Assembly: GCF_001194135.2 (NCBI RefSeq)
Contig: NC_068989.1
Location: 48,355,607-48,419,606 of the forward strand
Direction of reading: 5' to 3'
DNA: 64,000 bases
From: Octopus bimaculoides
Lineage: Eukaryota
The position numbers and the translations under genes were made by a program. Shown here piece after piece: positions 1 through 27,850 of the stretch. The notes under the pieces were generated by a model, which did no database searches, was not told the origin of the DNA, and saw nothing but the letters and a program-made list of their open reading frames with translations. Every line of letters begins with the position of its first letter. The first letter of the stretch is position 1.

Positions 1-429
1 TTTGCTGCTAGGTTATTTTTGTTTTCTTCCTCCAACTAAGAAAGTTAAATCAGTCAAAAACTTACTTTTTTCCCTCTGTCATTCATACTTGAATTATCCA
101 AATTCTTTATATCTACCCACATATGGGTTTTTTTTAGCTCTCCAATCACTTTTCTTAATCATACAAATTACTGTTGGGTAAAAATATCATTAATGACTTT
201 ATCAAATTTCATATAAGAACCTAAATAACCAGAACTAAATTATTTCAAAATACAATTTTTTGGGACATTTTCTTGACAAGTCTGTATTTTCAGATTTAAG
301 ATACTGTTATGAAAGCTTGCTTTAGTGCATGGTGGGGAGAGCATAACATAAAAAAGGGTGGGAGGAGACTTGATTAGTAAGAACAAAAGATAAAGAGATT
401 GTTCATTATCAACATCGTGTTATTTCAAG

Positions 430-1226
430 ATGATGGCAGTAACTGTTTCGCGGCATGCAATAGCTGATGACTGTGAACATATTATTGGTTTATTCAAGGT
501 ATGTGCTGAATACTTTAAGTGAACTTTTATTTGTTAATTAATTTTGGGGGCTAAAATATATTTAAGTATCATAAAATCTTCATGTAATCTCCTTTATTGT
601 GACAGCCAGAACTGCAGCATTTTATCATTATGAACAAAGTGAGCTCGTCATATTATATTTATTTAGTTGTCCAAATAACAAAATAACAATCAGCTCTTGC
701 ATTGCATCTTTTTTCATGCACTCCTTTGTTGAGCATTCAACTTTACAGTCCAAACCAAAATAATGCAAAAAACAAAAATATTGAAAAATACTTGACTGCC
801 CAAGTCATTTTACTTGCTTGAAGAACTTTTAATGTATATGTTGCAACTGTGACTATTCTATATGATTTTTTTTCTCTTTTGTCAACTCTCTCAATATATT
901 GAGCAAAATTTAATATAATTCCTGATAAAAATTATTTCAGAACAATACAATTTAAAACAAATGCTAACTCCTATCTAACTAATTATCATGAATTGTATTA
1001 AATTTATTGAATATTATTGTAACCCTTGTTCACTATTTTGTCAGTGTTTGTGTTTGTGTGTGTGTGTGTGTGTGTGCGTGCACGTGCGCGCACATGTGTG
1101 TGTGTGTGTACATACACACATGGAATTTTGGTTTAAGCACCCCATATAACTCCTTATAACTTTTTCTGTTGGACTTAGAAAATTTTTGCGAATTTGTGTT
1201 TTAAACACTGGAGTTGATACGATTGT

Positions 1227-1296
<70 letters not shown>

Positions 1297-4200
1297 CTTT
1301 CTGTTTATCCCCCACCAGGTGTTGGTATGTTTATGTCCCCATAACTTAGTAATTCAGCCAAAGAGATTCATAGAATAAGTATCAAGCTTAAAAAATAAAA
1401 TAAGTACTGGGGCCAATTAGTTTGACAAAAATTTCAAAGTGGTGCCCCAACTTGGTCACAGTCTAATGACTGAAACGAGTAAGAGATAAAAGACATTACA
1501 CACACATATATATAAATATTTTTTTTCTTGGAACCATGTCTGCATCAATGAATTATTGAATTTAACTTTTCTCTGAAAGATAATGAGGCGATAATGTTGG
1601 GTGTCAAAAACATTGAGTGATCAAGAATGACCAATGAATGTGTGATTGAAAGAAAGACAGGGAATTATTTGTTTATGTGAACTCAAACTGATCAATGAAT
1701 TGGATCTTTTTGGTGCAGACCTGTTCAAAAAAGCCATAATATGAAAATTGTAATCTTCATAATTAGAGGTCTTAATAATATAGATTATATGAAACTTTCA
1801 GTTAATTTTAATTATAGTGTTTAACTGGTGTTTGATTATGAGAATATATTTTGGTTCTCAATACTAGGAACAAGTAAAATCTGGAGAAAAGAAAAACCCA
1901 CCTTCTGTGGATGGTAAGTATATGTCCCTTATTGCTTAACTTTGTTCCAATCAGTCTTGAATGTGAAATAATAATTAGTGTATTTACAAACATGAAAATT
2001 TTGTTTTGTTGTTTGGTTGCTTACTAGTCACCAAAGCATGAAGGTGGTGTATTTGGACCAAACTGCTGGTATGAATTTCTGACTGTTGTGATCTGAATTT
2101 AACTCTTTAGTATTCAGATTACTCTGTCAAATGCAATACTTATTTATTTTCATTGTTTTGAATTAATCAATCATTATCTCAAGCATTGAGATTTTGATGA
2201 TGTGATTGCTTATTTTTAGAATGAGATTGTTGGGTAGGTGTGGGAGGCCAGATCAAGTCAGTTTGAACATAAAACATGTAGAATATTTAATGAAGTTGGC
2301 AGAATGGAATAAGTACATTTATTTGCAAGGGATGTGAGTTCTGAAGTTTTGAGTAAAACCCTTTCTCAGAAAGAGAAACTGAAACTGCTTAAGCTAGCAT
2401 TACTAATCCAAACCCTGGGTTTTATATTCAGTTTTGTGTAAAGTAGACATTATGTAGACATGGCTGATATTTGATTGAGGATTTTTTCCCCTTTTTATCT
2501 ACAAAAGAAAACTGAAATTACCAGTCTTTGTTGCCTTACTAACACCAACCACTTTACATCATCTACTGAGTGCTTTTTTTTTTTTTTTCATCACACTAGC
2601 ACTAGTGAGGTCACCATGTTGCTTGCAACTCTATGAATCCCAAGGAGTTGGGAATCAGTTTTATAGTAAAGGACAAGGTGTTAAAGAATGAGAGTAGGTG
2701 GGGGTGTGGGCAGAAGAGGTACTTTAGAGTAGGATGGTTACTCACAGTTGATTAAAAGTGGAAGAGAATGATCAGTTGGAGCTTTGAAGAGATAAGTAGT
2801 GGAGGCGAGGAGTCCTGGTGACCTCCACCCATCAAGGCAAGAGGTGAGTGGAAGGTTTTTATTGAGGAGCAGGAGATGGGGAGGAAGACTGCAACTGTTA
2901 ATGTTTTATAAAGAAGATATTATTTAACTTATTCGTTCATACTATAACAGTAGTTGAAGAGGAAAGAAGCCAACTAATGGTTATATTTTTATGTCTACTT
3001 TATTTTAGATCTAAAAACCTACTGTTTGAATGGAGAGAACTCGTTCAATATCCTCATTGCTGAATGGAATCATAAAGCTCCTTCAAAAGGTGAGATTTTT
3101 GTTCAGTGTTGCATTCTTCTCTCTGTCTCAGTGGCCAACTTGCACATCTCTGTGTTGACAGCAAACTCGACTGTGTCTGTGTTGGATTCTATGACTGGAT
3201 GCTCTTCTTAAAACCAACCACTTTACAGATTGTAGTGGGTGCTATTTTTTTTTTGTGGCCCCTGCACTGGTGAGGTTACCAAGTACTTGCAAGACAAGAC
3301 CCCTCAACTGATTGGTATAATGACCTTTTGAATGATAACTGACAAGAAAAGAGCACGTCCATGTCTTGTGTGTGAGTTTTCCATTTGCTCCTTTGTTGAG
3401 CTTCTGTTTACATATTCACATACACATTCTTACAATTGTCGTGATTTTCTAGCAGTTGACAGACCAAGCACAGGACCATTGGTTGGATATATGTTCTACC
3501 AATACATATTCTCCACATGGGAAGGCATGACTATACAAATAACTGACCTGTACGTGTCACCACTACCACAATATGAGTTCATCTGTAAAGATCTGTTTCA
3601 TTTCCTATCCAAGGTAATATAAATTTAGTTTATCTTTTTCTTTGTATTGTAGTTTGCTTAAAAGATTGCAGTATGTGTAAATGATATGTTTGAGAAAATT
3701 TTTTTTTCCTCATTTTGAGCAATTCAGATAAGCAAACAATAAGAAAAGGTACTGTTTTATTTAATATGCATTGTTTTAATGATCCTATAATATTGGGTCA
3801 TCCCATATATAATGAGGATTTTATACTTCTTTTATTTTTCAAAATCAAGATAAACAAAGTTCTTTTTTAATGTGAAATATACTCACCTTCATTTTCTACA
3901 TTGCTCTTCCATCCATCTGGCAGACTTGCAAGGCTTCTCTTCCAAGATTCACTTGTCCGTGATGAAAGATACTCCTCCAGTACTGTTCTGACCTCATCTA
4001 CAGAATTCATATTTTTTCTGTCCAAATAATTTTGAAGACTGCAGAATAAATGATAATCAGATAGGGCAATGTCTGGTGAATATGGGGGGTGGGGTATCGT
4101 TTCAGCCTCTGGAATGTCAACCTTGCTGTATGTGGCCAAGCACTATCCTGACAGAACACCTTTCATCTTGAAACCAAAGATTGTCAATTTTCTTCTAGCA

Positions 4201-6771
4201 CTGACTTAAGCCACTCAAGCTGCTCACAGTAGATCTCCTTTGTTATTGTTTGGTTTGGATTTAAAAGTTCAAAGTGGACTAAACCTTTCACATCCCACCA
4301 AACAGATAACAACACCTTACATGGGTGACGACCTTCTATAGCCTGAGGTGTCAGTGTTTCTCTTTTCCCTACCCACTGTCTTCTGCACTTGACATTTTTA
4401 TGGAGAACCCATTTCTGTCACTATCTGTCCCAAAAAGGTTCATTTGTGGGATGTGACAGCAAAGAGAACACATTCACTCTCTGCATGTAATTAGACTCAG
4501 AAAGTTTGTGAGGAACCCACTGACTCAATTTTCTAACTTTTCCAATGGCTCACAAGTGTCAATGAATGGTTGAATGACCAAATTCAAGCTTCTCTGCTAG
4601 TTCCTCAACAGTTACAATGGGATTTTGTTCTACCAGGGTTTGCAGGATGCTCTTGTCAAGCTCTATAGATCTTCCAGGATGAAGATCATCTTTTAGGCTG
4701 TAGTTTCCTGCTCGGAAATTCTGGAACCACCGTTGACACTGGCTTATGTTTATTGTCTGATCCCTATATACTGCATTAATATTCCTTGCACTTTCTGTTG
4801 CACTGTTGCCTTTATTGATTGCATAGAGCTGAATATGCTGAATATGCTCCTTTATCACTTCCATTGTAGCTTTGAAAAAAATTACTGTTAAAATCAAACT
4901 GCACTCTTCAAAACTTGCACTAAGAATAAGGGCAAAGTTAAAATTACTACCTGCTTTTATAGCAAGTTGATGCAGGTAGTTTATCCTGTTCCCCTCTGTC
5001 TTTTAGTTAATGCAATTGAAACAAATGCATTATTTATGGGATGACCCAATATTTCAGGAAAGATTTCTCCTTTTCAAATAGAAATGTATTGTTACTAGCA
5101 AGTGTACTTCTATAGTTTTTCATTTTATACAATACTTTAAGTGAATTTGGTTGATGGAAACTGTAGGAAGCTCATCACATATGCATGTGAATGAGTTTAA
5201 ACGCACACATGCAAACGTGCTAGAATGTTGATATTCCACAGTTTCATTTGTCACCACCAGAATGAAATGGTGTTGATGTTTATTGTTTACATTCCTTGTT
5301 GGTGTTATGACTGGTTACTCCACCCCTTTGAGTACCTGTTGAATAAAAAAAAAATCCCAGACTTGACTTTGATTCAGTCCCACTGTGCAGTAGCTTGGGC
5401 AAGTGTTTTCTGTTATAGATCCAGGCCAGTCAAAGCTTTGCAAGTAGATTTTGTTGATAGAAACTGAAAGAAGCCCATTGTGTATATGTATATAATAATT
5501 TATATATATAAAATTAATAAGGTAAAAAATGGAGAGTTGAGGACGTATAGTTAATTTATTTGTATCATAGTTTGTTGTTAAGATTTAAATACAAATAAAT
5601 TTTAAAAACACAATAGAAAACTCAATAATCTACGTATTCTGACCCCTTTGTAATGCGTAATCCAAAGCATTTGGGTTAAATCCCATGTTAAGAATTTGTT
5701 ATCATTTTAAGCTGTATGGGGCAGAATCTCTTCAGAGTTTCTTGTTTTGATAAAATGGAGGTTACATATTTATTGAAGGGACTCAATTCAACAACTAAAG
5801 AAGTTTAAAATGTTATTTCCTATATATTGAGTGAATGTACTTGTTAAGGTTATCATTCAAGAAAAATTAAAGATAAAATAAAATAAACATATATTTAAAA
5901 AAATATATGAATAATATGAATAATAAAATAAAAATAATGCTATATCTGTATGGGAAAATAATCATGTAATAAAATAAATAAATTAAAAATATACAATAAA
6001 TAATAAGTAATGAATAATAAATAAACCGTTATAATTGTATATTTTCCATTGGCTCGCTATTAGATACAAGTAAATATTCATGTATATGTGTTCGTCGAAT
6101 CATATCTAATCAAATTTAATCGTTTATATATATGTTAGTATCTACTCAAATTTGAATAATCTAGCCGTTAATAGATGTATCAGTCAAGTTAATATATATA
6201 CATAGACTTCTATACAAGCACTTGACAACTAGTGTTGGTTTGCTTACATCCCTGTAATACAGTAGTTTAGCAAAAGAGACTGATAAAATAAGTATCAGGC
6301 TTAAAAAAAAATAAGTATTGGGGTCAATTTCTTCTGCCCTTCTAGACTGTACCCCAGCATAGTTGTTTCCCATGGACAGAAACAAATAAAAGATAAGATA
6401 CTTGAAAAACCGGTGAGAGTTCTGGACAGGAAGAGCATCTGGTCATAAAATCTTACCTTAAATAAGTCCTCATGGAAAAATGGACATTAAATAAAGGAAT
6501 TAATCTCATACTTTTAATGATGTCAACATTTTTATTTAACAGCAAGATCATTATAAATCATAGCTTTTAATTGTGTGTGTTTTCTTCTTTTCCCTTCTTG
6601 CAGATGTCTGTAGATGAGAATTGTGTTCAAGTGCAATGGCGAACAAATGGTAACAATGACTTGAAAAACTTAAGCAAATATTTTAATGCCATGAATATGA
6701 CAGAGATGGCAAATTGTCTTGCAAAGAAACTCGAAAAGCATCAGCTGAAAGAAATTTGCTCTAGTTGCTAA
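430..6771 (+). CDS. SSAT/diamine N-acetyltransferase-like GNAT protein, copy 1 (5 exons, ~173 aa; probable pseudoenzyme)
   Basis: Exons 430-498, 1868-1913, 3009-3089, 3456-3613 (or 3453 via TAGCAG) and 6604-6771. All introns are GT-AG and phases 0,1,1,0 are compatible. Protein: MMAVTVSRHAIADDCEHIIGLFK-EQVKSGEKKNPPSVD-DLKTYCLNGENSFNILIAEWNHKAPSK-VDRPSTGPLVGYMFYQYIFSTWEGMTIQITDLYVSPLPQYEFICKDLFHFLSK-MSVDENCVQVQWRTNGNNDLKNLSKYFNAMNMTEMANCLAKKLEKHQLKEICSSC*. It aligns by eye to human SAT1 ([41 protein letters not shown]), and intron positions and phases match as recalled. Confidence 0.85.
3793..5049 (-). mobile_element. Full-length degraded mariner (Tc1/mariner) transposon in an intron of SSAT-like copy 1
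   Basis: TIRs ttgggtcatcccata.. / ..tatgggatgacccaa, TA target duplication at 3791-3792 and 5050-5051. Transposase relics carry the HTH region, WVPHKL and HPPYSPDIA motifs with stops and frameshifts. The empty site is seen in copy 2 at 29179-29200. Confidence 0.9.
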
Positions 6772-10740: not shown

Positions 10741-11267
10741 ACCTTTTGTTTTTCTCTTCTCTTAAATTCTGCTCTTCCTTTAGTAATCCTGTTGTTTTAG
10801 ATCAATGTATAGAATTACGTATATATGTAAGTATACTGTAAAGTGTTAAAATGTATGTATAATCTCCTAATATAATAATGAGCATTGTCTTTTTATGTTT
10901 GTGTGTATGTGTGTGTGTGTATATGCTCACACTTCAAATGCCGTTTATTGGCTTTTTCACTCCTTTTGTTATTCATCTCTCACCCTTTCCTTTCTCATTC
11001 ACACGACACTCTCTTTACCATTTATCTCCTCTACCATCACCTCTCACTCCGGCTCTATTATATAAATGTGCACATATATATATATATGTGTCGTGTGAAT
11101 GAGAAAGGAAAGGGTGAGAGATGAATAACAAAAGGAGTGAAAAAGCCAATAAACGACATTTGAAGTGTGAGCATATGTGTATGTAAAAGAGAGGTATGNN
11201 NNNNNNNNATAAACGACATTTGAAGTGTGAGCATATGTGTATGTAAAAGAGAGGTATGCTTGCATGC

Positions 11268-11313
<46 letters not shown>

Positions 11314-12149
11314 AATGGAATTGGGATGGTAATGTTCAATGCTGAAAATATGTGAGTATATATGTGTATGTGTGTACAAGAGAAACTTTACATGTACATA
11401 TAAAGTTTAAAAAATCTGAAAAATAATCCAGAATCCTTGTCCAGTACTGGATTGATCCCAAAATCTAATGAGACTGTGCCAGTCATGAGGGCAAACATCC
11501 CTGAAAGTTTCATCCGAATCCATCCAGTGGTTCTTGAGATATTTTCTCCACAGACAAACAAACAAACATGACTGAAAACAATACCTCTGCCTTAGCGAAG
11601 GTGGAGGTAATAAATGTCCTGATGCTGTGTCAAGCAGTGGCTCTCGTGGCTTCTGATCTTAACTGATTGGAAGTGCTATCATGTACATTGTTTTGTCTTG
11701 AGATAAAAGATGGGCTACAGCAAATATTCTGTTTAATACCACAGATTTGCTTGTCAGTTGTTTGACCTTAACCAGTTGAGCATGTCCCTTAGTTGCTGAT
11801 GATATGTGCGTATCTGAGGAGCATTATAGCCATGTATTGAAAGGAATTCTTTAAGGTTTGAATAATTCACCTCTGGAAACATGGGTGTTTTGTTTAACAT
11901 CCTTAAACAACTCTTATTCAGGAACCTTTTGAGTGGGATGGGCTACTCAACCTGAAGAAAATTCTAACTGGGCCCCACCTGCAAGGTCATGTGCTGTTTA
12001 TTTTGATATGAGATCACCATGTTGTGAGCATATGGCTGTGGTGCATGTTCCTGGTATACCCTTATCAGATGAGTAGTCATTATGGGTATACTGGGCTTTG
12101 TATATTTTACCCCAGTGTCACTTTGATGGCATGCTCTGCTCTCTCACTC

Positions 12150-12183
<34 letters not shown>

Positions 12184-12235
12184 TATACATACATACGCGC
12201 GCGCGCACGCACGCACACGCACGCGCGCGCGCGCG

Positions 12236-12287
<52 letters not shown>
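12150..12287. repeat. Compound microsatellite (TAA)n-(CG/CA)n; also (TG)n at 1035-1110, 1225-1293 and 11270-11310
   Basis: Directly visible. Confidence 0.95.
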
Positions 12288-12770: not shown

Positions 12771-12779
12771 CCTCCATAA

Positions 12780-13255
12780 TATACTGTTATGAAAGGTTTT
12801 TATTGTGCATGGGAGGTGGGAGCATAATATAAAAAAAAGGTGGTTGGGAGACTTGATTGTTGAAAACAAAAGATAAAGAGATAGTTCATTGTCAATATAG
12901 TTTTATTCCAACATGGTGGCACCAACTGTCTCATGGCATACAACAGCTGATGATTGTGAACACATTATTGGTTTATTCGAGGTATGTGTTGAATATTTTA
13001 TGTGAAATTTTATTTGTTAATTAATTGGTAATTTGGTGGAATTCGGCTTTATGCATGGTATATAACATTTTTATTTTTTCGAATTTTCAAAAAATTTTGT
13101 GAATTTGTGTTCAACACATGTCATTTTGCATGCTTGAAGAACTTTCAACATATATGTTCCAACCATGACAATACCATGCAGCATTTTTTTTTACTCTCTC
13201 TTATGAACAAATGAGCAATGCAAAATATATTGAGCAACATTGTTCAACATTTTAA

Positions 13256-13289
<34 letters not shown>

Positions 13290-13320
13290 NNNNNNNNNNA
13301 TATGTATATTTTTATTAATA

Positions 13321-13359
<39 letters not shown>

Positions 13360-14420
13360 ATTCTGCTTAAAGCATCTCATATAACCTCTTAACTTTTTTA
13401 TTTTTGGGAATTTTCAGAAAACTTTTCCAAATTTGTGTTTTACACACAGAAATGCATATGATTATGCAAAAAATTTCTGAAAATTAAAAAAAGTTATGAG
13501 GGGATACTTAAACCACCCAGATATGTATTTACTTCTCTTTTCACAGTCGAACTGAACTCAAAACCATGTGGTTTGGAAGCAAACTTCAAACCACACAGCC
13601 ATGCCTCCACATATATATTTATACAAAAAGATGTAATGTATACACACACTGAGACACTTCAACTGTCAGTCCTAGTTTCTTGTATTACATTGTATTTTAC
13701 TCCACTTTGATGGTTGGTTGTCAGTTCTCTACAATTATTTGCAAAATGTGTCACAGACATAACTGTATAGTTATGTAGTTTGCATTGCAATGATGTGTTA
13801 GGTTTCTATCTTACTATCACTTTAGGAAGATGCCTCCTACTATAACTGCAGACTAACTGAGCTTTTGGTTGTAACCCATGCCAGTATGGAAAGCGGATGT
13901 TAAATGATGATGATGTATGTAAATGCTCACATTCTGTGTGTCCCTTGCTTGATACTGTGCAAGCAAAAGGATGACACTTACATTTCTTGCAAACAATACT
14001 TCCGGTCATTTTGCTTTTGCAGCGACTCAAGGAATAAAAGAATAATTGCTTATTAAAAAAACAGAGAGACAGAAAGGATATCTGGCAGTAAAATATTCTT
14101 TTCTACTCTAGGCACAAGGCCCGAAATTTTTGGGGAGAGGGCCAGTCGATTAGATTGACCCCAGTATGCAACTGGTACTTAATTTATTGACCCTGAAAGG
14201 ATGAAAGGCAAACTCAACCTTGGCAGAATATGAACTCAGAAAGTAAAGACAGATGAAATACTGCTATGCATTTCACCTAGTGTGCTAACGTTTCTGCCAG
14301 TTCACCACCTTCTGGCCATAAAATATTGCTGCAGTAACTCTCTGTCCAGCCCTTACCAGTAAGGAAAAGATAACATAAAACAAACAACCTAGAGAAAGTG
14401 TCATCTACTATAACCACGGG
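12780..14420 (+). pseudogene. Truncated third SSAT-like copy (upstream region, exon 1 and part of intron 1)
   Basis: Exon 1 12913-12981 reads MVAPTVSWHTTADDCEHIIGLFE|gtatgt. Flanks match 300-520 and 800-1210 of copy 1 and 21678-21780 of copy 2. No downstream exons were found. It abuts a Tc1/mariner fragment on the left and a Gypsy fragment on the right. Confidence 0.75.
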
Positions 14421-14449
14421 TTAACACTGAAATGGGGGATCTGCTCCAT

Positions 14450-15870
14450 TGAAATCAGGATGGATTCGGCTACCACTGACAAGAAGAGGGTGTGAACCAA
14501 AGGGGCTGCGGAAATGCTAGTGAAGCGCTGCCTAGGGATTCTAGGGGAGCTGATTGGCAAGTGCGACCTGAAGCTGAGTGTGGTCTTTGTGCCTTCAGAG
14601 AGAAACAAGGCAGATGCTCTAACCAGGGTAAAAAAGGCCTGGTTACGGAAGCCAGAAGAATCGAAGCAAGGGGTAGCCATGGTGTGTTAGTTAAGTGACT
14701 CCGAGCTAAGGAGACTGCATACCATGCATCATATAAGCATGGATAGGTGCCTGTATCTCACCAGGAGGATTGACGCCAACATTACCAGATGGAGCATCCA
14801 GAAGGTGGTCAGTAACTGTGACAGGTGTCAATCCATCAACCCTGCTCCAGGTGTGCATGAGCAGGGAAACATTTTGGTAGAGCACAACTGGAGACAATTA
14901 GCAGATGGTTGATTGTGGGCTGGGCCACATGGCCATTTGGAGGGAATTGAGGACAGGCACTGCAGATGAGATGGCATGTATTCTAAATGAGGTATTCTTA
15001 GAGTGGGGCTCTATGGATAAATTGCTGATAGACAACAGTACAGCATTTTGTTTGGAAGCACTGAAGGAGATGCTTGACAGGTGGAAAGTGCACCGCTTTT
15101 TCAGAGCAGCATACAGTGGAAATGGTATTGTGAAGAGACATCATCGAACAATCAAGGTCACAATCAAGGAAGTGGTGTTCTGGTACAACATATTGCCTTG
15201 ATCAGGACAGGCCGAAGCGTTCGTGCCACATAGAGCGATATTCAAATATGAATGGTGGCATCTGAGTAAATCATCGAGATTCCCTGTGAAAGAGAGAGGG
15301 CCTGCTTTGGTGGAGATGAGAATTGAAGTCTGGATCTAGACACCAAAGACACGCTGTACAACTCAGTGTAACAGAAGAATAGTGATGGCTGTCAATTTCA
15401 AAAACATCTCTGTGGATGGAATACTGTGTCATGTCTTGGCTGTTTGTAGGATTCTCGCTTCGTCGGATGATGATTGTGAAGAAGAGGAAGAGAACGAGGT
15501 TCCCAGTTTAAGAAGATCACAATATGTAAGGCGCCCACCTAGGTGGGTGGTAGATTTCGACATGGAGTGAAGTGAGGAGGTGATTTTTGAGATCAGGAGG
15601 GCATGTGGGGATGAGCCAGAAGAAGAAGACCATGACGTCAATGGTCAAGGGACTGACCAGAAGAGGAAGTGTGAGAAAGGAAGTGCAGGAGAGGGGGACA
15701 GGAGAAGGTCATCCTCTTTTGGCCGGCCGAGGCATTGCAAACAGACATGAAGGAATTCGCTCTTGGGTTGGAGATAGCAGCTGCTTATACTGGGTGACAG
15801 GGTAGGACAGGATCACCTGAGTGACTACTACTAGATGGGTGCAGACAAGAGAGGAAGGTAGGTGAACCTC
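14450..15870 (+). mobile_element. Gypsy-like LTR retrotransposon relic (RNase H, integrase, start of 3' LTR)
   Basis: VPSERNKADALTRV (RNase H), H..HH..CDRC zinc finger, VDCG..AIWREL, DNSTAF and GNGIVKRHHRTIK (integrase core). A purine-rich tract is followed by TGTGGG at ~15604. Frameshifted. Confidence 0.8.
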
Positions 15871-15873
15871 TTT

Positions 15874-16220
15874 TCATTTCCCACGCACGACAGCGTTATA
15901 TGATTTAAGGATTATATGCGATTCCCTTACACACAATGTAAACCTATCTGAACTATTACCATATGGGGGATCCCTCACAATTATGGACCATGTCAGGTTG
16001 TAAGGCAAGTTACAATCCCTAAGTTTATTTATATATGCTGTTAAGGTAGTGGAATTCTTATAATTAGGGTTTGAAAAGGAATTCAGATGGACCCTATATC
16101 GTCTTTTGCAGTCTATCATACTACCTATACATATATATCTTGTTTTGTCTATTGGGTACACTAACTATACATTTATACACAACATTGTATCAAAGACATA
16201 ATCCAGCAAGTAGACAGGTT
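15874..16220 (-). mobile_element. Penelope-like element GIY-YIG endonuclease fragment
   Basis: YICIGSMIDCKRRYRVHLNSFSNPNYKNSTTLTAYINKLR..LTWSII...LCVRESHII fits the Penelope GIY-YIG pattern. Confidence 0.7.
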
Positions 16221-17065
16221 TTGGGGGCTCTACAGTTACAAATTTTATTCAGTTGCGTCCTACTATTAATGTTCTTATTTATATTTCCAGCATTATTAAT
16301 ATCATCAGATTGGAGTATGGTACCTGGTTTTAAATTCATTAAAGTTTGATTATTATTATACATGTCACTTTTATCTCATATCTTAGTTGTATTAGGAATT
16401 TTTAGATGATTTAGGCAGTCTGCCATTTTGAAGATTGACGTTTTTATTCCTATATCTATCAACCTCTCATTCGTTTTCTGCCTCCTATATTTATCACGCA
16501 TAACTTTTTACATGGAATCCTTATTTATATGTAATTTTATATGTATTTTTATATGCTTTTATATTTCTCTTATATTTTTATGTATGTTTGGTTTTATTCT
16601 TTATATCTTTGGAGAATTTTTATGCCTGGACATGCATGCTTTATATTGATGTATATAAATATATAAGATTCAATTACATTGATCGAATATCTTCATTTAT
16701 GTTCATGTCTTCATTTATTTTCATTTACGTGTTCGGGAATTTGGTTGATTGCGTAGGATTTGTGTTTTCATTTTCCTCTACTTTGTATAAATACACACAC
16801 ACACACACACATATTCACATGCGCGCACACACGCGCACACACGCGCACACGCACACACACACACATATGTAGGTCAAATACTATAATGTTACACTTGTCC
16901 TTCAGCTGATAGTGAAAATGACATTGCCACTTTGAATTACTTGAAATTCAACACTGCATTTCCTATCAACCTCACTATCAGAGAATGAAAAAACAAGCCC
17001 AAATCTTAAGCTGATCCCTTCTCACAATAATTGAACTTTTCTAGAATTTCCATATAGAAACAAAA

Positions 17066-20000
17066 CATCATCATCATCATCATCGTTTAACGTCCGTTTT
17101 CCATGCTGGCATGGGTTGGACTGTTCGACTGGGGTCTGGGAAGCCAGGAGGCTGCACCAGGCCCCAATCTGATCTGGCAATGTTTCTACAGCTGGATGCC
17201 CTTCCTAACGCCAACCACTCCAAGAGTGCTTTTTACGTGCCACCGGCACAAGGGGTCAGAGGAGCTGGCATCGACCACAATCGGATGGTGCTTTTTATGT
17301 GCCACTGGCACGGAAGCCAGTCAAGGTGGCACTGGCATCAGTCATGTTCGGATGGTGCTTTTTACATGCTACCGGCACGGGGCTCACAACTACAATTTCC
17401 ATTTGATTCCATTTTGATATTGATGTTGATGTACTTGACTCAATAGGTCTACTCAAGCACGCCATGTCGCCCTACGATCCAAGGTACTTTTGAGTGGGCC
17501 GGTTATGCGACAGTGGTGTAGGTTACAGCTGTGAACTCACTTTATTTGCCGGGTCTTCTCAGTCACCGCATATCTCCAGAGGTCTCGGTCTTTTGCCATT
17601 GCCTCTGTGAGGCCCAACGTTCGAAGGTCATGCTTCACCACCTCATCCCATGTCTTCCTGGGTCTCCCTCTACCCTGGATTCCTTCCACTGTTTGGGAGT
17701 GGCACTTCTTCACACAGCTCTCCTCATCCATCCACAGTACATGACCACACCAACACAAACATCTCTCTTGCACTCCACATCTGATGCTTCTAATGTCTAC
17801 CATTTCTCTCAAGGCACTTACACTCTGTCATGTGTGCATACTGACATTACACATCCTGCGGATCATGCTAGCTTAATTTCTTTCGAGCCTACGCATGTCT
17901 TCAGCAGTCACAGCCCATGTTTCACTGCCATGAAGCATGGCAGTTCACACACATGCATCATACAATCTATTTTTCACTCTGAGCGAGAGGCCCTATGTCA
18001 CCAGTAGGGGTAGAAACACTCTGACCTTTGCCCAAGCTGTTCTTATTCTAGTGGTAACACTTTCTGAGCATCCAACCTCACTACAGACTTGATAGCGGAA
18101 GCTATAAACTACTTCTAGTTTCTCTCCCTTGCATGTGATGGAGTCTGTTTTCTGAGCGTCTGTGTTGTTTATTGCCTCTGTGCATCTGCTGCATGTGAAA
18201 GCGATTTCCCAGTTAATCTTCCGTTGATGTTGCTGCACCTCTTATGTGTCCATAGTTTACACTGGGTACATCTTATGGAATTTCTACCTACACATTTTCC
18301 ACAGATCGAGCAGGACCACCTACCTGAAGGGGTGTGATGTGTTCACCTTCCTACTTATTAGAACTTTGGTCTTTGCAACATTGACTCTAAGGCCCTTCGA
18401 TTCTAAACCTTGCTTCCAGACTTGAATTTTCTTCTCTTGTTCTGGTAGGAATTCTGCTATGAGGGCCAGATCATCAGTACCGAGGAGTTCCCAGGGACGA
18501 CCTGTCTTGAATTCCTCTGTTATTGCCAGGAGGACTATGATGAATAAGAGGGGGCTAAGGGCTGATCCTTGGTGGACCTCAACTTCTACCCGGAATTCTT
18601 CACTATACTCATTTCCAATCCTAGCCCTATTGACGGCATCTCTGTATAGGGTCTGTACAGCTCTTATTAACCATTCGTCAATCTCCAGTTTCTGTATTGC
18701 TCACCAGATAAGGGATTGGGGGACCCTGTCAAAGGCTTTCTCCAAGTCCACAAAAGCTAAATATAGGGGTTTATCTTTGGCTAGGTATTTCTCCTGCAGT
18801 TGCAGTACCAGAAATATAGCATCAGTGGCACTTCTACCTGGCACAAAACTGAACTGCATCTCATCTAAGCAGACTCTCTCCCTAGTTAGTTGGGCTATGA
18901 CCCTCTCCATGACCTTCATCACCTCATCCAGCAGTTTGATACCCCCTGTAGCTATTTCTATCTAAAGCATCACCTTTACCTTTGTAGCAGTTGACTATGG
19001 TGCTGCTACGCCAGTCATTGGATATGACTCCATCATGAACTACCTGGTTTACAATACAGGTGACTAGGCCAAAGCCCACACCACCAGATGTTTTAAGCAT
19101 CTCAGAGGTGATTCCTGATGGGTTGGGGGCTTTTCCTGGCTTCATATTCTTAATTGCTTTATCTACCAGGGTGCTGTCTATTCGGATAGCTGGTCCCTCT
19201 ACTGGATCAACATTTGGCAGGCTCTCCTCCTCCTACTCATTCTCCACGTTCAACAGTCACAATGGCTCCTCCAAGCCTCTTTCTTTTCCGAATCACTAAA
19301 AGCAAGTGCACCATCATCCATGTGGACATATTTCTCTCCTGTGACATCACAATTTTCTCTCATACACTGTCTCGCAATCTGGAATACTTCAGTTCTTTGG
19401 TCCTCCTGTCACTGGACATTGGCAAACTTCTTCTATTCTGCTTCGCCCTTGGCTATGTATGCCTGTCGCCCAGCCTCCCTTTTGGCTCTCTGGTATGGTT
19501 CCCTGCTACCCCAACCCTTCCAGGCTTTCCAGGCCTGTTTCTTTGCTCTAATGGCATTGTCTACTGTATTATTCCACCACCACGTTACTCTAAGTCTGGA
19601 AGGGACTTTGCACCATTTGCAGACTTGGTCTGTGGCAGTCAGTAAGCTATCCCATAAGAATTTCCAGCTACCCTCTATGTCCAAGGACTGTAGTTCCTCC
19701 TCCCTCTCATCAAATTTCTTGATGAGGATGTCCCTAAATCTCTGACCATGTGAAGGGTTCTTTAGCTTCCAAATCCTTCTCTTGTGGATTGGTCTGCTTC
19801 AAGGCATCCTCCTGGCCTCGACTCAAAAGTCACTAATGACTAGTCTATGTTGGTGGAGTGCATTCCTCACCTGAGAGGGTCTTTGTATTTAAGAGCAACC
19901 CTGCGTCCCACTGTCTGGTGAGGATGAACTCAATCTGGCTAGCAGAGTCCTCTGATTGATAGGTTATCAAGTGGCTGTCTGGCTTCCTGAACTTAGTGTT

Positions 20001-20115: not shown

Positions 20116-20598
20116 AAATGTTCTTAAATAAATTAACAAATGTTCTTATCAAGAACATGGGACAAAACAGTTATCACAGTGCCCCAGCAATCCACTTTGA
20201 AATCCTTTGTCATATGTCCATCATGTATCGATTTTGTTTGGAATAAGCACCTCCTAGAATTCAACAAACCAGGAACCAGTATGATATGCGAACATGAAAC
20301 TTTTATTGCTGGTACACAAGCAACACAACCCTCCAGACAACTGTTTTGCAAATTCAACCATTAACCACGCTGTCTTAAAATTTATATTATCATCATTTTC
20401 CTCTAGATAACCAGAACTAATTTATTTGAAAGTAAAATTTTTTTTCTTTTCTTTTTTACATTTTCTTGACACCTCTGGATTTTCAGATTTAAGATACCGT
20501 TATGAAAGGTTATTATAGTGACTTATTATAGGGACTTGATTGGTCGGAACAAAAATAAAAGAGACTATTCATTGTCAACACCGTGTAATTTCAAGACG

Positions 20599-23500
20599 AT
20601 GGCGCTAATTGCCTCGCGGCATGCAACAGCTGATGACTGTGAATTCATTATTGGTTTATTCGAGGTATGTGTTGAATGTTTTATGTGAACTTTTATATGT
20701 TAATTAATAGGTAATATTTTATGCTAAAAAATGTTTATATCATAAAGTCTTCGAGCGTATTCTTTTTTCTTTATCGTGACGGCCAGAACCGCAGTATGTT
20801 TTCATTTATAAACAAAGTGAGTTCGTTTATTATATTTATTTAGTTTCACCTCTTGCATTGCATCTCTTATCATGCACTCCTTTTCGGACATCCGACTTTA
20901 CGGTCCGAACCAAACCAAAGTAAAAAAATATTTAAAATTTGTAAAATACTTCACTGTTGAAGTCATTTTGCATACATGAACTTTCGACGTATGTTCCGAC
21001 CGTGACTGTCCCATGCGGTTTTGTTTTCAACTTTCTTATTAATAATTAAACAATGCAAAATATATTAAACAAAATTTAATATAATTTGTGATAAATATTA
21101 TTTCAACATAATACAATTCAAAATAAATACTAGTTCGTTTAGAACAAGTTTTACACCTATTACACTATTTTTCTTTTGTTTTTTCGCTCGGGTCAAGCGC
21201 TTTAGTTTAACCAAAATTTGAATTACAATATTTTTGTTGTTGTTGCTTATAATCCACCAATGGACCACGCGTGTGTTATTTGGTTTGGGATGTGCTACAA
21301 ACCCCAGCCAAATCTCCCTTGAATCGTCCACCTTTTCCTCTGAAAACGATACTAATGATATTTATTCGTGTATGTACTCATTTTTTCTTTCTTTTTTTTC
21401 TCTCTTGTTTCAGTCATTTGACTGCGGCCATGCTGGAACACCGCCTTTAGTCGAGCAGATCGACCCCAGGACTTATTCTTTGGAAGCCTAGTACTTATTT
21501 TATCGGTCTCTTTTGCCGAACCGCTAAGTTACGGGGACGTAAACACACCAGCATCGGTTGTCAAGCGATGTTGGGCGGACAAACACACACACACACATAT
21601 ACATATATACGACAGACTTCTTTGAGTTTCCGTCTACCAAATCCACTCACAAGGCTTCAGTCGGCCCGTGGTTATAGGATATCTGGCAGTAAAATATTGC
21701 TGCAATAACTTTTCCAGCAAGGAAAAGTTAACATAAAACGAACGACCTTGTGTGAGTGTTGTCTACTAAAACCACAGGTTGACCAAAGCTTTTTGAGAGG
21801 AAACTAAAAGAAGCATATTGTGAGTGTGTTTGAGTCTTTGTATTTGTATCTCCCCAATTCCAACTTGTTAATTAATGTGGCTTGTGTATATCCCTGTAAC
21901 GTAGCGGTTTGGCAAAAGAGACCGATAGAATAAGTAACAGGCTTTAAAAAAAGTACTGACAGTGTCCCAGCATGGCCATAGTCCAATGTCAGAAACAAGT
22001 AAAAGATACATAAAGACCCACACTACGAAGCACAATGTATTTTACCTCTATTCAACCCAGAAAGACATGAAAACTAACTGAAACTGCTGATGTTAATATT
22101 AAAACATTTTGATTAAAGAAAAAAAAATACCGAGAACCACTTGGATGTTTCCACTGGTAGATGGTTGGGTAGGTTATTGGAAAGAGATATAACAATCAAA
22201 CCTACTGTGTGTGTGTGTGTGTATCTGTAAGAGGGAGAGAGAGATGGTATTCCATCTTGGCCTTCGTCGTAATGGCTAAATACCTAAAGAACACATGGTC
22301 TCCATCTCAGTTTCTTTTAATAAGGTTGATAAACTATTTTTTTTTTTAGCCATAATTCTGATATGTGCCACATTTGGAAAACACCTAAAGACTCATCTCA
22401 CAAATAGTTCTCCCCACTACCTTTATAAAAGGTGTGTGTTATGAGTTTTAAAAAATGTGTAGTGTGGATTTTTTATTTGGTTGATAATCCAAAACGAAAG
22501 AGCAATAGATGGATTTGTTTGGGTGTAAAGCAAAGTGCTCCGAAAGTGAAAGTAAACAACCATAAAATTTATGTAAAAACTACTTTCATAGGTACTGGCA
22601 TTGTTGTATAAGAAGCTTGCTTCCCAACCACATGGTTCTGGGTTCAGTCCCACTACGTGGCACCATGGGTGAAAGTCTTCTACTATAGCCTCCGGCTGAC
22701 CAAAGCCTTGTGAGTGCATTTGTTAGATGGAAACTGAAAGAAGCCTGCCATATATGTATGATTATATGTATATGTTTACATCCCTGTAACTTAGCAGTTT
22801 GGCAAAACAGACTGATAGAATAAGTACTAGACTTACAATTCATATTGTTCCTAAAATACATGTATACTTGGACTGTGGAAAGAGAAATTTATACATGCTT
22901 TATGGCTCAGACCTTTTATCAAGTTAGAGTAGCATTTCCCAACCTGTTTTCTCTCAGGACCCACTATAACTTTCCCAAAAAATGTATGTCTCACTACTTT
23001 TTGGTAAAAAACAACTTTATCTTTAATATCTTATCACGTTTAACATAAAAGAATCTACTCTTTTATTAAGTACTGAGTTCAAAAAAAAGAAGTACATTAT
23101 TGACAAAGAAATAAAAGTTAATCACTTTAATGAGAACCTTGTACCAGGCGACTTCAGCACCAAGCCCTACCACATTTTTCCTTGGTCCCCACCAGTGGGG
23201 TGTATGCCCCACGTTGGGAATCGTTGAGTTAAAAAGAGAAAAGTGAAATTTTAAGAAAAAAATATTACATGCTGTTAGACAGGTGTCATTATAGTTACAG
23301 AGACAGGAAGTGGGAAGGTAGTGGTGGATTTTGAAGAGGGGTGTTGGTGAGTATGGTAGGCATTTTTTTGCCATGAATATGTTGACTGATTTATTGTTTC
23401 AGTATTTAAGGATAAATACTAAATACAGAGACTGATGATAGTTGTGTGAATAGGTCATGATGACTCAGTGATAGTATTAGCTAGATGCCATGCTCTATTA

Positions 23501-26500
23501 TGTGTATCTTGTCATGTTCTAGTTTCTGTAAGAACTTCACGACAAACCAATGATTGGAGCCTCTTCATAATTACTCAACCTGCTAGAAATAGCAGTCCAA
23601 TCTCTAATTACTCCATACTGTCTTGAGAAAGGAAAGACTATATTGAACCATTAATTCTACACACATATGGCCCAGACCATGATTATCAACATGAACATCA
23701 AACTTCAAAAAGTAGTTAGCTATTTAATGGTTTTAGTAAATTTATACAGAAAAAGTAAGCATTATACCATCCAGCATAAATAAAAGTCAACTTCACTATA
23801 TTTTTTCTGTAAAAACCTATTCTGACATTAAATGAGTCAACTTCTGGTATGAATGTTTACATTTGTACATCATTTTTCAACAAAAAAGAATTTCTAAAAA
23901 ATTCTGGAAACTATCTACTCATGTAATTTACGCACCCCCTAAAGTTTATTTTTGTTTTTGCAAAAGAAGTGCGTAAATTACATGGGTTTTTACAGTATAT
24001 TCTATGGCTTTTCAAGGATTCCTGGATGTCTCTTAATACAATCAATTTTCATTATAAAACTGCACCTTGTTGCCAATACCCATGGATGATCTGTATAAAG
24101 CAAACTACAAGGTCTATAACCAAACTGAATTTACATATATATATATAAATTGGAAATGTAAAAATAAAAACAAGACACAAAGGATTCTGTGGTACACGTG
24201 TTTCAAGCTTTTGTTTTTATTTTTACATTTCCAATTTATTCCTTCACCCCGGCCACAATCTGGCATACACAGGTGCTTATAATTATCAAGTATTACCTCT
24301 AACATTTATATATATATATAAATTGGAAATGTAAAAATAAAAACAAGACACAAAGGATTCTGTGGTACACGTGTTTCAAGCTTTTGTTTTTATNNNNNNN
24401 NNNTTAATGCTTAACTTGCTCCAATCAGTCTTGAATGTGAAATAATAATTAGTATATTTACAAACATGAAAATTTTGTTTTGTTGTTTGGTTGCTTACTA
24501 GTCACCAAAGCATAAAGGTGGTGTATTTGGACCAAACAGCTGGTATGAATTTCTGACTGTTGTGATCTGAATTTAACTCTTTAGTATTCAGATTACTCTG
24601 TCAAATACAATACTTATTTATTTTCATTGTTTTGAATTAATCAATCATTATCTCAAGCATTGAGATTTTGATGATGTGATTGCTTATTTTTAGAATGACA
24701 TTGTTGGGTAGGTGTGGGAGGCCAGATCAAGTCATTTTGAACATAAAACATAAATATTTTGGCTGGTTTAAATGCAAAATGGTTAATTCCATTTGTTAAA
24801 ATTCATCTGATTTATGTATCATCATTGTCATCATTATCCCTGTTTTACATATACATTTTCCATGCTGGCATTGGTTAGATTTGTCTCACTGTTTCTCATC
24901 ACTTGTTGTAATTCTTCATAATCTACCACATAGAGAGAAAGCTCTGTGAATTAAGTTCAAGAGTGGCCAAGATTACTTTTGCCTTTCATCCTTTTGAGAT
25001 AGTGGATTGACCAAAATGTAAGAATGTTGGATCCAACACCTTGCAGTGTTTGCTATGGTTCTCGACATTCCAAGCTCAAATCCAGCCTTGACCTACAAAT
25101 TTGCCACCTGGCACTTTGGATGCTTTTATTGAAGTCCATTCTGTTGCATGTATCTGGACCAGGCTTTCAATTTGAGGATGCCTTCTTCCCCTTCACCAAT
25201 GTCAGTGGATCTGTAACAAGTCATAGACACTGCCTTCTCTTGTGACTAAAAGATAAATAAAACCTGCTGATATTTGATGTGTAAGCTCTGTTTGAGTTAG
25301 CCTCTTCAAGGCTGGAATATACTTCAATACCCAACAGTTATTGACACTCTACAAAGCTCAAGTGAGGCCTACAGTAGGGTGTTGCTTTCACATCTAAGAC
25401 AGTGCTGTTGCGATACACACATACATGTTCTAGACTGAATCATGAAAATGGCTATATTGGCTGATTAGCACAAAATCACTTACAGATGCACTCCATGCTC
25501 TGGCCTACAGATGTACTGTCACCTCTGTGCTTGTTCTACTACTATTATCATAGGGATCTTTCTTCTTCACTCCACACAAACATTCCTGTCCTACTCATCT
25601 TTTCCTCTCATCACCCTTGTTTTGTCTAACTCCAGTAGGTCTTGTAATAATCACTACACCAAGTCTTTCCTTCCCAAAATGTTGGCCTTCTTGGAATTCT
25701 ATTCATACTGATGTCTCATCTGCAGATATTGACTTGCAAAGATTCAAGTGGAACCTTAATGGCATCAATCTTGCTGGTCTAAGAAGGTTTGTGAAGGCCA
25801 TGGGCACTGCACCACCTAACGACCTGCAAATATTAAAAAATCATTCAAATACATAAGATTCTTCACTGACCTGTTTTAGCATTTAGTGAAGCTGATAGAA
25901 TTGAATAAGTACATTTGTTGACAAGAGATTCGAGTTCTGAAGTTTTGAGTTAAACATCTTCTCTGAGAGGGAAATTGAAACTGCTCAAGATAGCACTGTT
26001 TCCTCAAACCCTGGGTTTATATATAAAATGTTGTGTAAACTGAAATTTATGGAGACATAGTTGTTGTTTGATTGAAGCTTCTCTACCCGTGTTGTCTACA
26101 AAAGAAAACTGAAATCATCAGTCTTTATTACCTTACTAACACCAATTACTTTACAGTATTTACTGGCTGCATTTATTTCATGACACCACTACTAGTGAGG
26201 TCACCATGCTGCTTGGAACACTATGAACCCTGAGGAGGAGGAGGAGGAGGAGATCAGTTTTATGGTAAAGGACAAGGGGTTAAAGAATGAGAGGTGGGGT
26301 GTGGACAGAGGAGGTTCTTTACAGTAGGATGGTTACTCGCATTTAGTAAGAGAGTAAGAGGAAGATCAGTAGGAGCTTCAAATAGATAGTGGAGATGAGA
26401 CGTCCTGGTGATCTCCACCCCTCAAGGCAAGAGGTGAGTAGAAGTAGGTGGGTCGAAAGTTCGCAAGATTGTATTGAGGTACAGAGGATGGAAACTAAGA

Positions 26501-27808
26501 CTGAACCTTAATGTTTTATAATGAAGATATTATTTAGCTTATTCAGCATCTGTGCTGGTGGCATGACATCGAGGCAATGACAAATGACCAAGACCTTTGG
26601 CAATATGCTGTGCTTGAGAAAACCCATTAACCCTTTCATTACCGTATTTATTTTGAGATGCTCTGTGTTTCTTTCAATTAATTTTAAATATAACAAAGAA
26701 TTTAGTAAAATAACTTAGTTACCATTAAGCTAGTGTTAGGAACATAAATCATGACTAAAGTTTGGTGAAAGATTTTAATTCAGAACTTATGAAAGCAAAA
26801 CATTTGTACTTCAGGGCCAGAGGTGGTTTCAGCCAGGTTAGTATTGAAAGCGTTAAGTGAAGTGAAATCATAGTCATGACAGATACTGGTGTCATGCAAC
26901 TGGCACGTAAAAGCACCCATTACATTCTTGGAGTAGTTGGTGTTAGGAAGGGCATCCAGCCATAGAAACCATGCCAAATCAGCCGTGCTCAAACTTTCCA
27001 ACCCATGCCAGCATGGACAACATATATTAAATGATGATGATGATGTTTGTATTGTAACAGTACTTGAAGAGGAAACAAGCCAACTAATGGTTATATTTTT
27101 ATGTCTACTTTATTTTAGATCTAAAAACCTACTGCTTCAATGGAGAGAACTTATCTAATATCCTCGTTGCTGAATGGAATCATAAAGATCCTTCAAAAGG
27201 TAAGATTTTTGTTCAGTGTTGCCTTCTTGTCTCTNNNNNNNNNNNNNNNNNNNNNNNNNNNNNNNNNNNNNNNNNNNNNNNNNNNNNNNNNNNNNNNNNN
27301 NNNNNNNNNNNNNNNNNNNNNNNNNNNNNNNNNNNNNNNNNNNNNNNNNNNNNNNNNNNNNNNNNNNNNNNNNNNNNNNNNNNNNNNNNNNNNNNNNNNN
27401 NNNNNNNNNNNNNNNNNNNNNNNNNNNNNNNNNNNNNNNNNNNNNNNNNNNNNNNNNNNNNNNNNNNNNNNNNNNNNNNNNNNNNNNNNNNNNNNNNNNN
27501 NNNNNNNNNNNNNNNNNNNNNNNNNNNNNNNNNNNNNNNNNNNNNNNNNNNNNNNNNNNNNNNNNNNNNNNNNNNNNNNNNNNNNNNNNNNNNNNNNNNN
27601 NNNNNNNNNNNNNNNNNNNNNNNNNNNNNNNNNNNNNNNNNNNNNNNNNNNNNNNNNNNNNNNNNNNNNNNNNNNNNNNNNNNNNNNNNNNNNNNNNNNN
27701 NNNNNNNNNNNNNNNNNNNNNNNNNNNNNNNNNNNNNNNNNNNNNNNNNNNNNNNNNNNNNNNNNNNNNNNNNNNNNNNNNNNNNNNNNNNNNNNNNNNN
27801 NNNNNNNN

Positions 27809-27850
<42 letters not shown>

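Follow-up and report, generated by a model that had tools for sequence, protein, structure and literature searches.

The closest described relatives of the two genes considered here, copy 1 and copy 2 in a 64,000-nt window of the genome of Octopus bimaculoides (eukaryotic; all coordinates are positions in this window, the whole stretch of DNA that was analysed), are human SSAT2 (2bei) and SSAT1 (2b4d). The octopus and human proteins are homologous over their full length (173 versus 170–171 amino acids (aa)) and share the same GNAT topology, including the C-terminal strand and helix; they differ in that identity is only 22–25%. SSAT1 and SSAT2 are obligate homodimers whose active sites are shared across the interface. 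The Tyr140Phe replacement abolishes the activity of SAT1 (PMC7271128), and Glu92 is given as the proposed water-mediated general base in a passage of PMC10416765 that cites Hegde 2007.

Bacterial polyamine/canavanine acetyltransferases of the PaiA/LcGNAT type are likewise SSAT-like GNATs with a degenerate P-loop, but Glu92 and Tyr142 are both present in these active enzymes, whose activity suffers when either one is mutated (PMC10416765); the octopus proteins lack both. Within the same phylum and family, the cuttlefish SSAT P0048 (Acanthosepion pharaonis CAE1281408.1, annotated "speG") is, of the canonical sequences, the one closest to the degenerate clade described below in a neighbour-joining tree. 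Its identity to copy 1 is only 28%, and it keeps the motifs that copy 1 has lost, in the forms VEDFYV, CRKIGMG and INFYKRYGA.

Dead paralogues are known elsewhere in the polyamine pathway: antizyme inhibitor, which is an inactive ODC paralogue, the trypanosomatid AdoMetDC prozyme, and the dead subunit of deoxyhypusine synthase. The likeness lies in a duplicated enzyme whose catalytic residues are lost in one copy, in the retention of that copy by selection, and in a parent that is an obligate oligomer, so that regulation through hetero-oligomers or capture of a partner is plausible; the difference is that other folds and enzymes are involved, and that any partner, heterodimer or regulatory effect of the octopus proteins is hypothetical. 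The C-terminal pseudo-HAT of human O-GlcNAcase retains a GNAT fold, has a degenerate acetyl-CoA site and does not act as an acetyltransferase, but it is a domain of a larger enzyme, unrelated to SSAT, and not a stand-alone tandem family.

On balance, the evidence leans towards both octopus genes encoding cephalopod SSAT-derived pseudoenzymes, which would keep the SSAT-type GNAT fold and have lost the apparatus for acetyl-CoA-dependent N-acetylation. The genes are already annotated, but as enzymes (thialysine/diamine acetyltransferases or "speG"); our literature search, in which queries on GNAT pseudoenzymes yielded little that was relevant, found no paper describing them as non-catalytic.

Fold and active-site residues

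The search for exons was guided by human SAT1 (guide sequence identical to PDB 2b4d_A). Copy 1 consists of five GT-AG exons at 430–6771 (+) encoding 173 or 174 aa, in a model 99–100% identical to the O. bimaculoides RefSeq protein P0001, "thialysine N-epsilon-acetyltransferase"; the interval 3456–6771 given for it in a preliminary description of this DNA holds only exons 4 and 5. Copy 2 spans 20599–30174 and has four exons (1, 3, 4 and 5) in the assembled sequence (Table 1). The peptides quoted in that description are all present in the window, each in the copy to which it was ascribed.

Copy 1 matches human SSAT2 (2bei) in phmmer over query residues 8–153 (E = 3.5e-10), and 12 cephalopod sequences align with 17 canonical SSATs in hhalign over 164 columns (probability 100%, E = 5e-42). 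The residue equivalences agree across phmmer, MAFFT (an alignment of 20 sequences) and hhalign, and the similarity, judged on the sequences, is far beyond chance. A single-chain AlphaFold2 model of copy 1, built on a 25-sequence alignment, has a mean predicted local distance difference test score of 87.5 and a predicted template modelling (TM) score of 0.84. Its elements are β1 (4–9), α1 (12–27), α2 (37–45), β2 (52–59), β3 (75–86), β4 (90–100), α3 (106–123), β5 (128–132) and α4 (137–146), followed by a C-terminal strand and helix; this order is that of an SSAT-type GNAT and places the model within the GNAT fold. Foldseek returned 535 PDB matches at E ≤ 0.001, of which the best 50 are without exception acetyltransferases of the GNAT fold or related GNAT proteins and the best 20 are all SSAT2/SSAT1 (TM 0.61–0.75). 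By full-length homology and predicted fold, the genes belong to the SSAT family.

In the model, the SSAT-type fold is kept and the active-site residues are gone. LEDFFV of SSAT1 corresponds to ITDLYV in copy 1 and ITDLHV in copy 2, with Glu92 replaced by Thr, Asp93 kept, and Tyr95 replaced by His in copy 2. The motif A segment of SSAT1 corresponds, with no insertion or deletion, to PLPQYEFICKD in copy 1 and PLPEYESICEN in copy 2; Arg101 is replaced by Gln/Glu, Gly104 by Phe/Ser and Gly106 by Cys (copy 1/copy 2), and neither cofactor loop, QYEFIC or EYESIC, matches the Q/R-x-x-G-x-G/A pattern of motif A. Further downstream, NEPSINFYKRRGA aligns with NN-DLKNLS/GKYFNA, where Tyr140 is replaced by Ser in copy 1 and by Gly in copy 2, an equivalence secured on its C-terminal side by the conserved Ala145. 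Gly144 and Trp132 are also changed, both to Asn, and Glu28 is lost. Copy 1 alone has also lost Glu152 and Trp154; most other members of its clade keep both, as do copy 2 and OvB, the O. vulgaris counterpart introduced below. In place of EYMEEQ, the acidic α1–α2 segment of SSAT1, stands KSGEKKNPP, which is rich in Lys. In the canonical SSATs, R101, G106, N133 and Y140 are invariant (17/17), and E92 is present in at least 90%.

The preliminary description had claimed the absence of R/Q-x-x-G-x-G, Thr at E92, and Ser or Gly at Y140, and phmmer, MAFFT and hhalign concur; the retention of D93 and of the fold core, which it also proposed, is seen in the alignments and in the AlphaFold2 model. None of the three alignments places a Tyr or a Gly-rich loop at the catalytic positions. 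A shifted alignment that would bring the Tyr of "KYF" to the catalytic position was rejected, all three alignments placing this Tyr two residues downstream and the residue being Ser in the O. vulgaris and O. sinensis proteins. Adenosine-to-inosine editing was rejected as well: the codons ACT, TTC, TGT and AGC cannot become Glu, Gly, Gly and Tyr codons by A-to-G changes, so editing cannot restore the catalytic residues.

These losses leave almost no credence for the view, taken in RefSeq and in the O. maya study (PMC8976471), that the genes encode ordinary thialysine/diamine N-acetyltransferases. Their best database matches are SSAT2 and SSAT1, as this view would have it, but the defining catalytic and cofactor residues are missing, and there is no Pfam GNAT match: no family was matched for copy 1 even at E ≤ 10, the gathering scores of Acetyltransf_1/7/10 were not reached, and P0004 and P0102 had no family at E ≤ 0.01. 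Three less degenerate members of the same clade (P0110, P0024 and P0008) do pass Acetyltransf_1. It should also be noted that a separate canonical SSAT with all motifs exists in a cephalopod (P0048), so that in at least one species of the group a normal SSAT persists beside its degenerate paralogues.

The cephalopod family, selection and the history of the locus

An exhaustive phmmer scan of 1.8 billion representative proteins (E ≤ 1e-3) returned only 99 matches, the nearest of which are all cephalopod: three proteins of Argonauta hians, a fused tandem pair of Acanthosepion pharaonis, O. bimaculoides paralogue 3, and several contigs from Logan assemblies of public sequencing runs. A profile search added O. 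vulgaris P0110 and the Logan sequence P0111. In a word-indexed homologue search, a gastropod SSAT query returned gastropods only, and the copy 1 query returned three clusters. A canonical sequence from a Logan contig, P0143, is 42% identical to the cuttlefish SSAT P0048. Some annotated models are fusions: P0002 (O. sinensis, 269 aa) and P0003 (O. vulgaris, 241 aa) join exons of OvA, a second O. vulgaris gene, to exons 2–5 of OvB, and the A. pharaonis "speG" protein of 318 aa consists of two fused tandem copies.

In a neighbour-joining tree (Kimura distances, 200 bootstraps), the degenerate sequences, 15 in number and drawn from O. bimaculoides, O. vulgaris, O. sinensis, Argonauta hians, Acanthosepion pharaonis and Sepia esculenta, form one clade in 200/200 bootstraps, with the canonical cuttlefish SSAT P0048 as its sister in 55%. 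Since the clade includes octopods and cuttlefish, the loss of catalytic residues predates the split between them, which is roughly 250–300 Myr old. Judging from the sequences, the family has since split into no fewer than four subfamilies, and tandem duplication has recurred.

The substitutions extend across the clade. The Glu92 position is K, D, T, I or S in all 15 members, and at Tyr140 all 15 have S, C, V, A, T or G, versus Tyr in 17/17 canonical sequences; Glu28, Gly106, Trp132 and Gly144 are likewise replaced throughout the 15. Eleven residues are shared by 75% or more of the 17 canonical SSATs but kept in no more than 20% of the clade, namely I21, L24, A25, E28, P50, E92, G106, W132, Y140, G144 and R158; fold-core residues common to both groups are R7, A9, D13, C14, E23, L41, A57, E58, G73, D93, Y95, V96 and A145, with Asp93 kept in 14 of the 15 clade members. 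Motif A survives in two subfamilies only, as RNKGIA (P0024) and RTQGIS/C (P0010), both of which are still recognised by Pfam Acetyltransf_1, unlike the octopod subfamilies to which the window genes and paralogue 3 belong. Paralogue 3 has Leu at the motif A Gly positions, where copy 1 has Phe and Cys.

That no replacement residue is conserved at the Tyr140 position bears on the main rival explanation, which we regard as unlikely, namely that the proteins are still acyltransferases with non-canonical chemistry. Acetyl- or acyl-CoA would then be held by backbone amides of the β4–α3 loop, Asp93 (Asp97 in copy 1) would serve as base, Tyr95 or another residue would replace Tyr140, and the substrate might be new. 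The loop is of the same length as in SSAT1 and confidently modelled, and Asp93, Tyr95 and Val96 of β4 are conserved in both groups, but copy 2 has His for Tyr95, and O. vulgaris and O. sinensis have Ser for the nearby "KYF" Tyr. Active PaiA-type enzymes have a degenerate P-loop, with a second Tyr near β4 aiding catalysis (PMC10416765), and P0024 and P0010 retain a recognisable motif A; against this, Glu92, Gly106, Trp132 and Gly144 are lost jointly, other residues occupy the two Gly positions in copy 1 and paralogue 3, and the change of Tyr140 to Phe is enough by itself to inactivate SAT1 (PMC7271128).

Orthologues in O. vulgaris allowed selection on the genes to be estimated. Locus L001 (OX597822.1, 4.40–4.46 Mb) carries two intact five-exon genes of 173 aa, OvA and OvB, within L001 10001–46336; they have the same exon structure, each has its own exon 1 (that of OvB at L001 39160–39228), and the same substitutions are found in the two. 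The window genes have OvB as their counterpart; OvA is a more distant paralogue whose O. bimaculoides counterpart is XP_052826630-33. For exons 3–5, the ratio of non-synonymous to synonymous rates (ω; Nei–Gojobori, Fisher test) is 0.31 between copy 2 and OvB (8 synonymous and 11 non-synonymous changes, p = 0.015), 0.35 between copies 1 and 2 (p = 5e-4), and 0.30 between copy 1 and OvB (p = 3e-5); branch subtraction gives about 0.32 for the copy 1 lineage. Copy 2 and OvB have diverged by 4.7% in exons versus 12.7% in the adjacent intron, about a 2.7-fold difference (p = 2e-6). As far as these sequence comparisons go, the core exons are under purifying selection and the genes are not decaying pseudogenes. 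In their missing catalytic residues and in their conservation across species under purifying selection, the genes answer to the operational definition of a pseudoenzyme; the lack of activity that it also demands is predicted, and transcripts are known from relatives. The duplicated, SSAT-derived subfamily lacking the catalytic Tyr and Glu and having a degenerate acetyl-CoA loop, as first proposed, appears here as a 15-member clade with ω of about 0.3.

The two copies arose from duplication of the segment 221–7411, found again at 20403–30814 by self-comparison, mostly at 72–85% identity. The synonymous divergence (dS) between copies 1 and 2 is 0.36, about three times that between the species (0.11), which makes the duplication older than the separation of the species. 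In OvB, the 5′ half (exons 1–2 and flanks) is orthologous to copy 1 (window 2–2288, 85–89% identity), and the 3′ half with downstream DNA to copy 2 (window 24404–32134, 86–89%); the reciprocal halves match at 70–84% only. OvB thus appears, from these identities, to be a deletion hybrid of copy 1 exons 1–2 and copy 2 exons 3–5 with its break in intron 2, which suggests a deletion by unequal recombination within this intron in the O. vulgaris lineage. A 349-bp patch of intron 2 is 97.4% identical between the copies (1929–2277 versus 24404–24751) and abuts an N-gap, versus about 72–93% in the remaining duplication; it reflects either gene conversion, which might bring about recombination of this type, or sequence collapsed or misjoined in the assembly.

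The same gap lies at the centre of another explanation, that the window copies, and especially copy 2, are lineage-specific duplicates without a function or in decay, even though the family at large may function. Exon 2 of copy 2 is absent from the assembled sequence, which puts exons 1 and 3 out of frame, and RefSeq models the gene as a 96-aa fragment (P0112) starting inside exon 4. Homology to copy 1 restarts at 24404, equivalent to copy 1 position 1929, right after the N-gap; as the missing exon coincides exactly with this gap, which the 97%-identical repeat flanks, an assembly artefact is the simpler reading. The intact reading frames proposed in the preliminary description accordingly hold for copy 1, which has canonical splice sites, and not for copy 2 as assembled. 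An orphan exon 1 at 12913, a partial and dead duplication at the locus, the single hybrid gene that O. vulgaris has for the pair, and ω above 1 in exons 1–2 all speak for decay. Exons 3–5, with ω near 0.3 and significantly below 1 in both copies, and an O. maya transcript matching copy 1 speak the other way, and overall we consider decay very unlikely.

Possible role of the proteins

An old clade kept by selection probably serves some role other than that of the enzyme assigned in databases. From the residue losses, neither polyamines nor thialysine would be acetylated, given that Tyr140Phe by itself inactivates SAT1 (PMC7271128) and that Glu92 is the proposed general base (PMC10416765). The proteins would instead act by binding, through the conserved β-sheet core. 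By analogy with their obligately dimeric relatives, the most likely mode would be the formation of homo- or heterodimers with SSAT-family subunits or with another protein partner, and such dimers would modulate, or be decoupled from, polyamine catabolism instead of catalysing it.

Since the acidic residues of the substrate channel are mostly gone, protein binding seems, on the sequences, more likely than polyamine binding. A non-catalytic buffer or sensor that binds polyamines or biogenic amines in the old substrate channel, as the preliminary description envisaged, is decidedly unlikely in our estimate. Glu28, Glu92, Trp132 and Gly144 are lost in the clade, and Glu152 and Trp154 in copy 1; Glu28, Glu92, Glu152 and Trp154 are presumably part of the polyamine site and channel in SSAT, in which case only Asp93 survives in copy 1. 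Asp93 itself persists in nearly the whole clade, and most members are acidic (isoelectric point (pI) 4.8–6.2), which would suit an amine ligand, but some members are basic (P0024, pI 8.7), and the acidic α1–α2 segment has given way to a Lys-rich one. Co-regulation of the O. maya orthologue with spermidine synthase in the oviducal gland (PMC8976471) is a further point in favour of amine binding.

Expression can be followed in relatives. The O. maya oviducal gland paper (PMC8976471) gives quantitative PCR primers for "Diamine acetyltransferase 2" (TRINITY_DN14910), both of which match the spliced copy 1 coding sequence, with a single mismatch per primer. The forward primer lies across the exon 2/3 junction, its target being non-contiguous in the genome, and the predicted amplicon is 127 nt with the acceptor at 3456, equal to the published size; going by the primer match and the amplicon size, transcription and splicing of a close orthologue follow the model. 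The P0024 subfamily member is an uninterrupted, intronless open reading frame (ORF) of 166 aa on mRNA-like contigs of 1.7–1.9 kb in at least 112 runs, two of which are RNA sequencing (RNA-seq) runs of Sepia esculenta larvae, which points to transcription of a cuttlefish member at the larval stage.

A wider scheme can be put forward only tentatively, and we would not expect it to hold as a whole: in cephalopods, a duplicate of canonical SSAT may have given rise to at least four subfamilies of dead subunits acting as regulatory partners or decoys of polyamine catabolism, for example in heterodimers with active SSAT, with one octopod subfamily used in the female reproductive tract during sperm storage. 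Such subunits would be analogous to antizyme inhibitor or to the trypanosome prozyme.

Several observations weigh against the pseudoenzyme reading. It draws on sequence and on a structural model, and dimerisation and any partner are pure inference by analogy. Position 104 is non-Gly in 3 of the 17 canonical SSATs, all three from invertebrates, so the losses of Gly106 and Tyr140 are the stronger signal; together with the degenerate P-loop tolerated in active PaiA-type polyamine acetyltransferases (PMC10416765), this means that, to judge from sequence, acetyl-CoA may still be bound. The conserved Asp93 and Tyr95 could in principle support an altered chemistry. An ω of about 0.3 is looser than in typical enzymes, and ω exceeds 1 in exons 1–2, on about a dozen changes and not significantly. 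The intactness of copy 2 is unproven, its exon 2 falling in the gap and its RefSeq model being truncated. Long-branch attraction could inflate the bootstrap support of the clade. Finally, transcript support comes from a sister species and not from the O. bimaculoides genome, and the O. maya gene was called up-regulated in mated females by RNA-seq, the trend between stages in quantitative PCR not being significant (PMC8976471).

If the pseudoenzyme reading is true, the genes would add one more case in which a pseudoenzyme has evolved in the polyamine pathway, kept and repeatedly duplicated in octopods and cuttlefish alongside canonical SSAT, and would provide a tractable test of whether GNAT pseudoenzymes regulate active paralogues through dimerisation. 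This would not be a new kind of system, and the function proposed is read from the sequence. SSATs are catabolic. The "SAT2" gene was nevertheless taken in PMC8976471 as contributing to spermine and spermidine synthesis, and the O. maya orthologue was treated there as a working polyamine enzyme; because the sequence argues against a working enzyme, pathway inferences of this type need revisiting, and the practical gain lies in corrected annotation and in how "SAT2" is read in octopus reproductive transcriptomics.

Gene models and neighbouring sequence

The coordinates of the features are collected in Table 1.

Table 1. Exons, substituted active-site positions and related features of the two SSAT-like genes in the window.
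Feature	Position	Strand	Sequence	Remarks
Copy 1 exon 1	430–498	+	MMAVTVSRHAIADDCEHIIGLFK	ATG, GT donor at 499; β1 and start of α1
Copy 1 exon 2	1868–1913	+	EQVKSGEKKNPPSVD	AG/GT boundaries; in place of SSAT1 acidic α1–α2 segment
Copy 1 exon 3	3009–3089	+	DLKTYCLNGENSFNILIAEWNHKAPSK	
Copy 1 exon 4	3456–3613	+		β3, β4, degenerate cofactor loop, α3; alternative start 3453
Segment of copy 1	3539–3598		ITDLYVSPLPQYEFICKDLF	
Thr codon at SSAT1 Glu92 position, copy 1	3542–3544	+	ACT	From alignments
Replacement of motif A R101-G-F-G104-I-G106, copy 1	3569–3586	+	QYEFIC	From alignments
Copy 1 exon 5	6604–6771	+		β5, α4, C-terminal strand and helix, stop codon
Segment of copy 1	6652–6690		NNDLKNLSKYFNA	
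Ser codon at Tyr140 position, copy 1	6673–6675	+	AGC	From alignments
Orphan third exon 1	12913–12981	+	MVAPTVSWHTTADDCEHIIGLFE	Intact ATG and GT donor; about 250 nt of flanking homology
Copy 2 exon 1	20599–20664	+	MALIASRHATADDCEFIIGLFE	
Assembly gap	24394–24403	.	10 N	Expected site of copy 2 exon 2; self-comparison
Copy 2 exon 3	27119–27199	+		Followed by a 574-N gap, 27235–27808
Copy 2 exon 4	28010–28167	+		Thr codon 28096–28098; EYESIC 28123–28140
Segment of copy 2	28093–28152		ITDLHVLPLPEYESICENLF	
Copy 2 exon 5	30007–30174	+		Gly codon GGT 30076–30078 at Tyr140 position
Segment of copy 2	30055–30093		NNDLKNLGKYFNA	

Exon 4 is preceded by a NAGNAG tandem acceptor (tag|cag) at window 3451–3455 and in OvB (L001 43985–43989), which adds or omits one Ala. 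RefSeq P0001 uses its upstream AG; copy 2 has lost this AG (ttg|cag), and the 3456-type acceptor is its sole choice.

No downstream exons were found in the window for the orphan exon 1, whose flanks (12777–13466) consist of promoter-proximal and intron 1 sequence 80–83% identical to copy 1 and to O. vulgaris. It is a partial duplication between copies 1 and 2, and a third full paralogue in the window was rejected, the orphan exon being all that was seen.

Intron 4 of copy 1, about 3 kb long, holds the remnant of a broken mariner/Mos1-type transposase on the minus strand (3867–4897): the ORF at 4559–4897 matches Pfam HTH_48 (E = 2e-18), and that at 3867–4139 (−) looks like the C-terminal part of such a transposase. 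Intron 4 of copy 2 lacks the remnant and is about 1.15 kb shorter. Between the copies, at about 14000–20000, lies a degraded retroelement with a GC content of 0.40–0.46, versus about 0.34 elsewhere. Its minus-strand ORF at 18701–18922 matches Pfam RVT_1 (E = 1e-7), reverse transcriptase-like ORFs adjoin at 18924–19145 and 17537–17812, and there is a possible integrase-like fragment at 14905–15201 (+) with no Pfam match.

Microsatellites of the (GT)n/(CA)n type occur in introns and intergenic DNA at 1040–1110, 1224–1300, 11044–11379, 12190–12285 and 16790–16870. Several assembly gaps, at 11199–11208, 13290–13299, 27235–27808 and 51527–51774, are in or beside simple repeats. To the right of the two genes, window 33486–38716 is collinear (81–92% identity) with O. 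vulgaris DNA carrying a Peptidase_M3 (thimet-oligopeptidase-like) gene on the opposite strand, and judging from this match the 3′ end of the orthologous gene is probably present in the right-hand part of the window.

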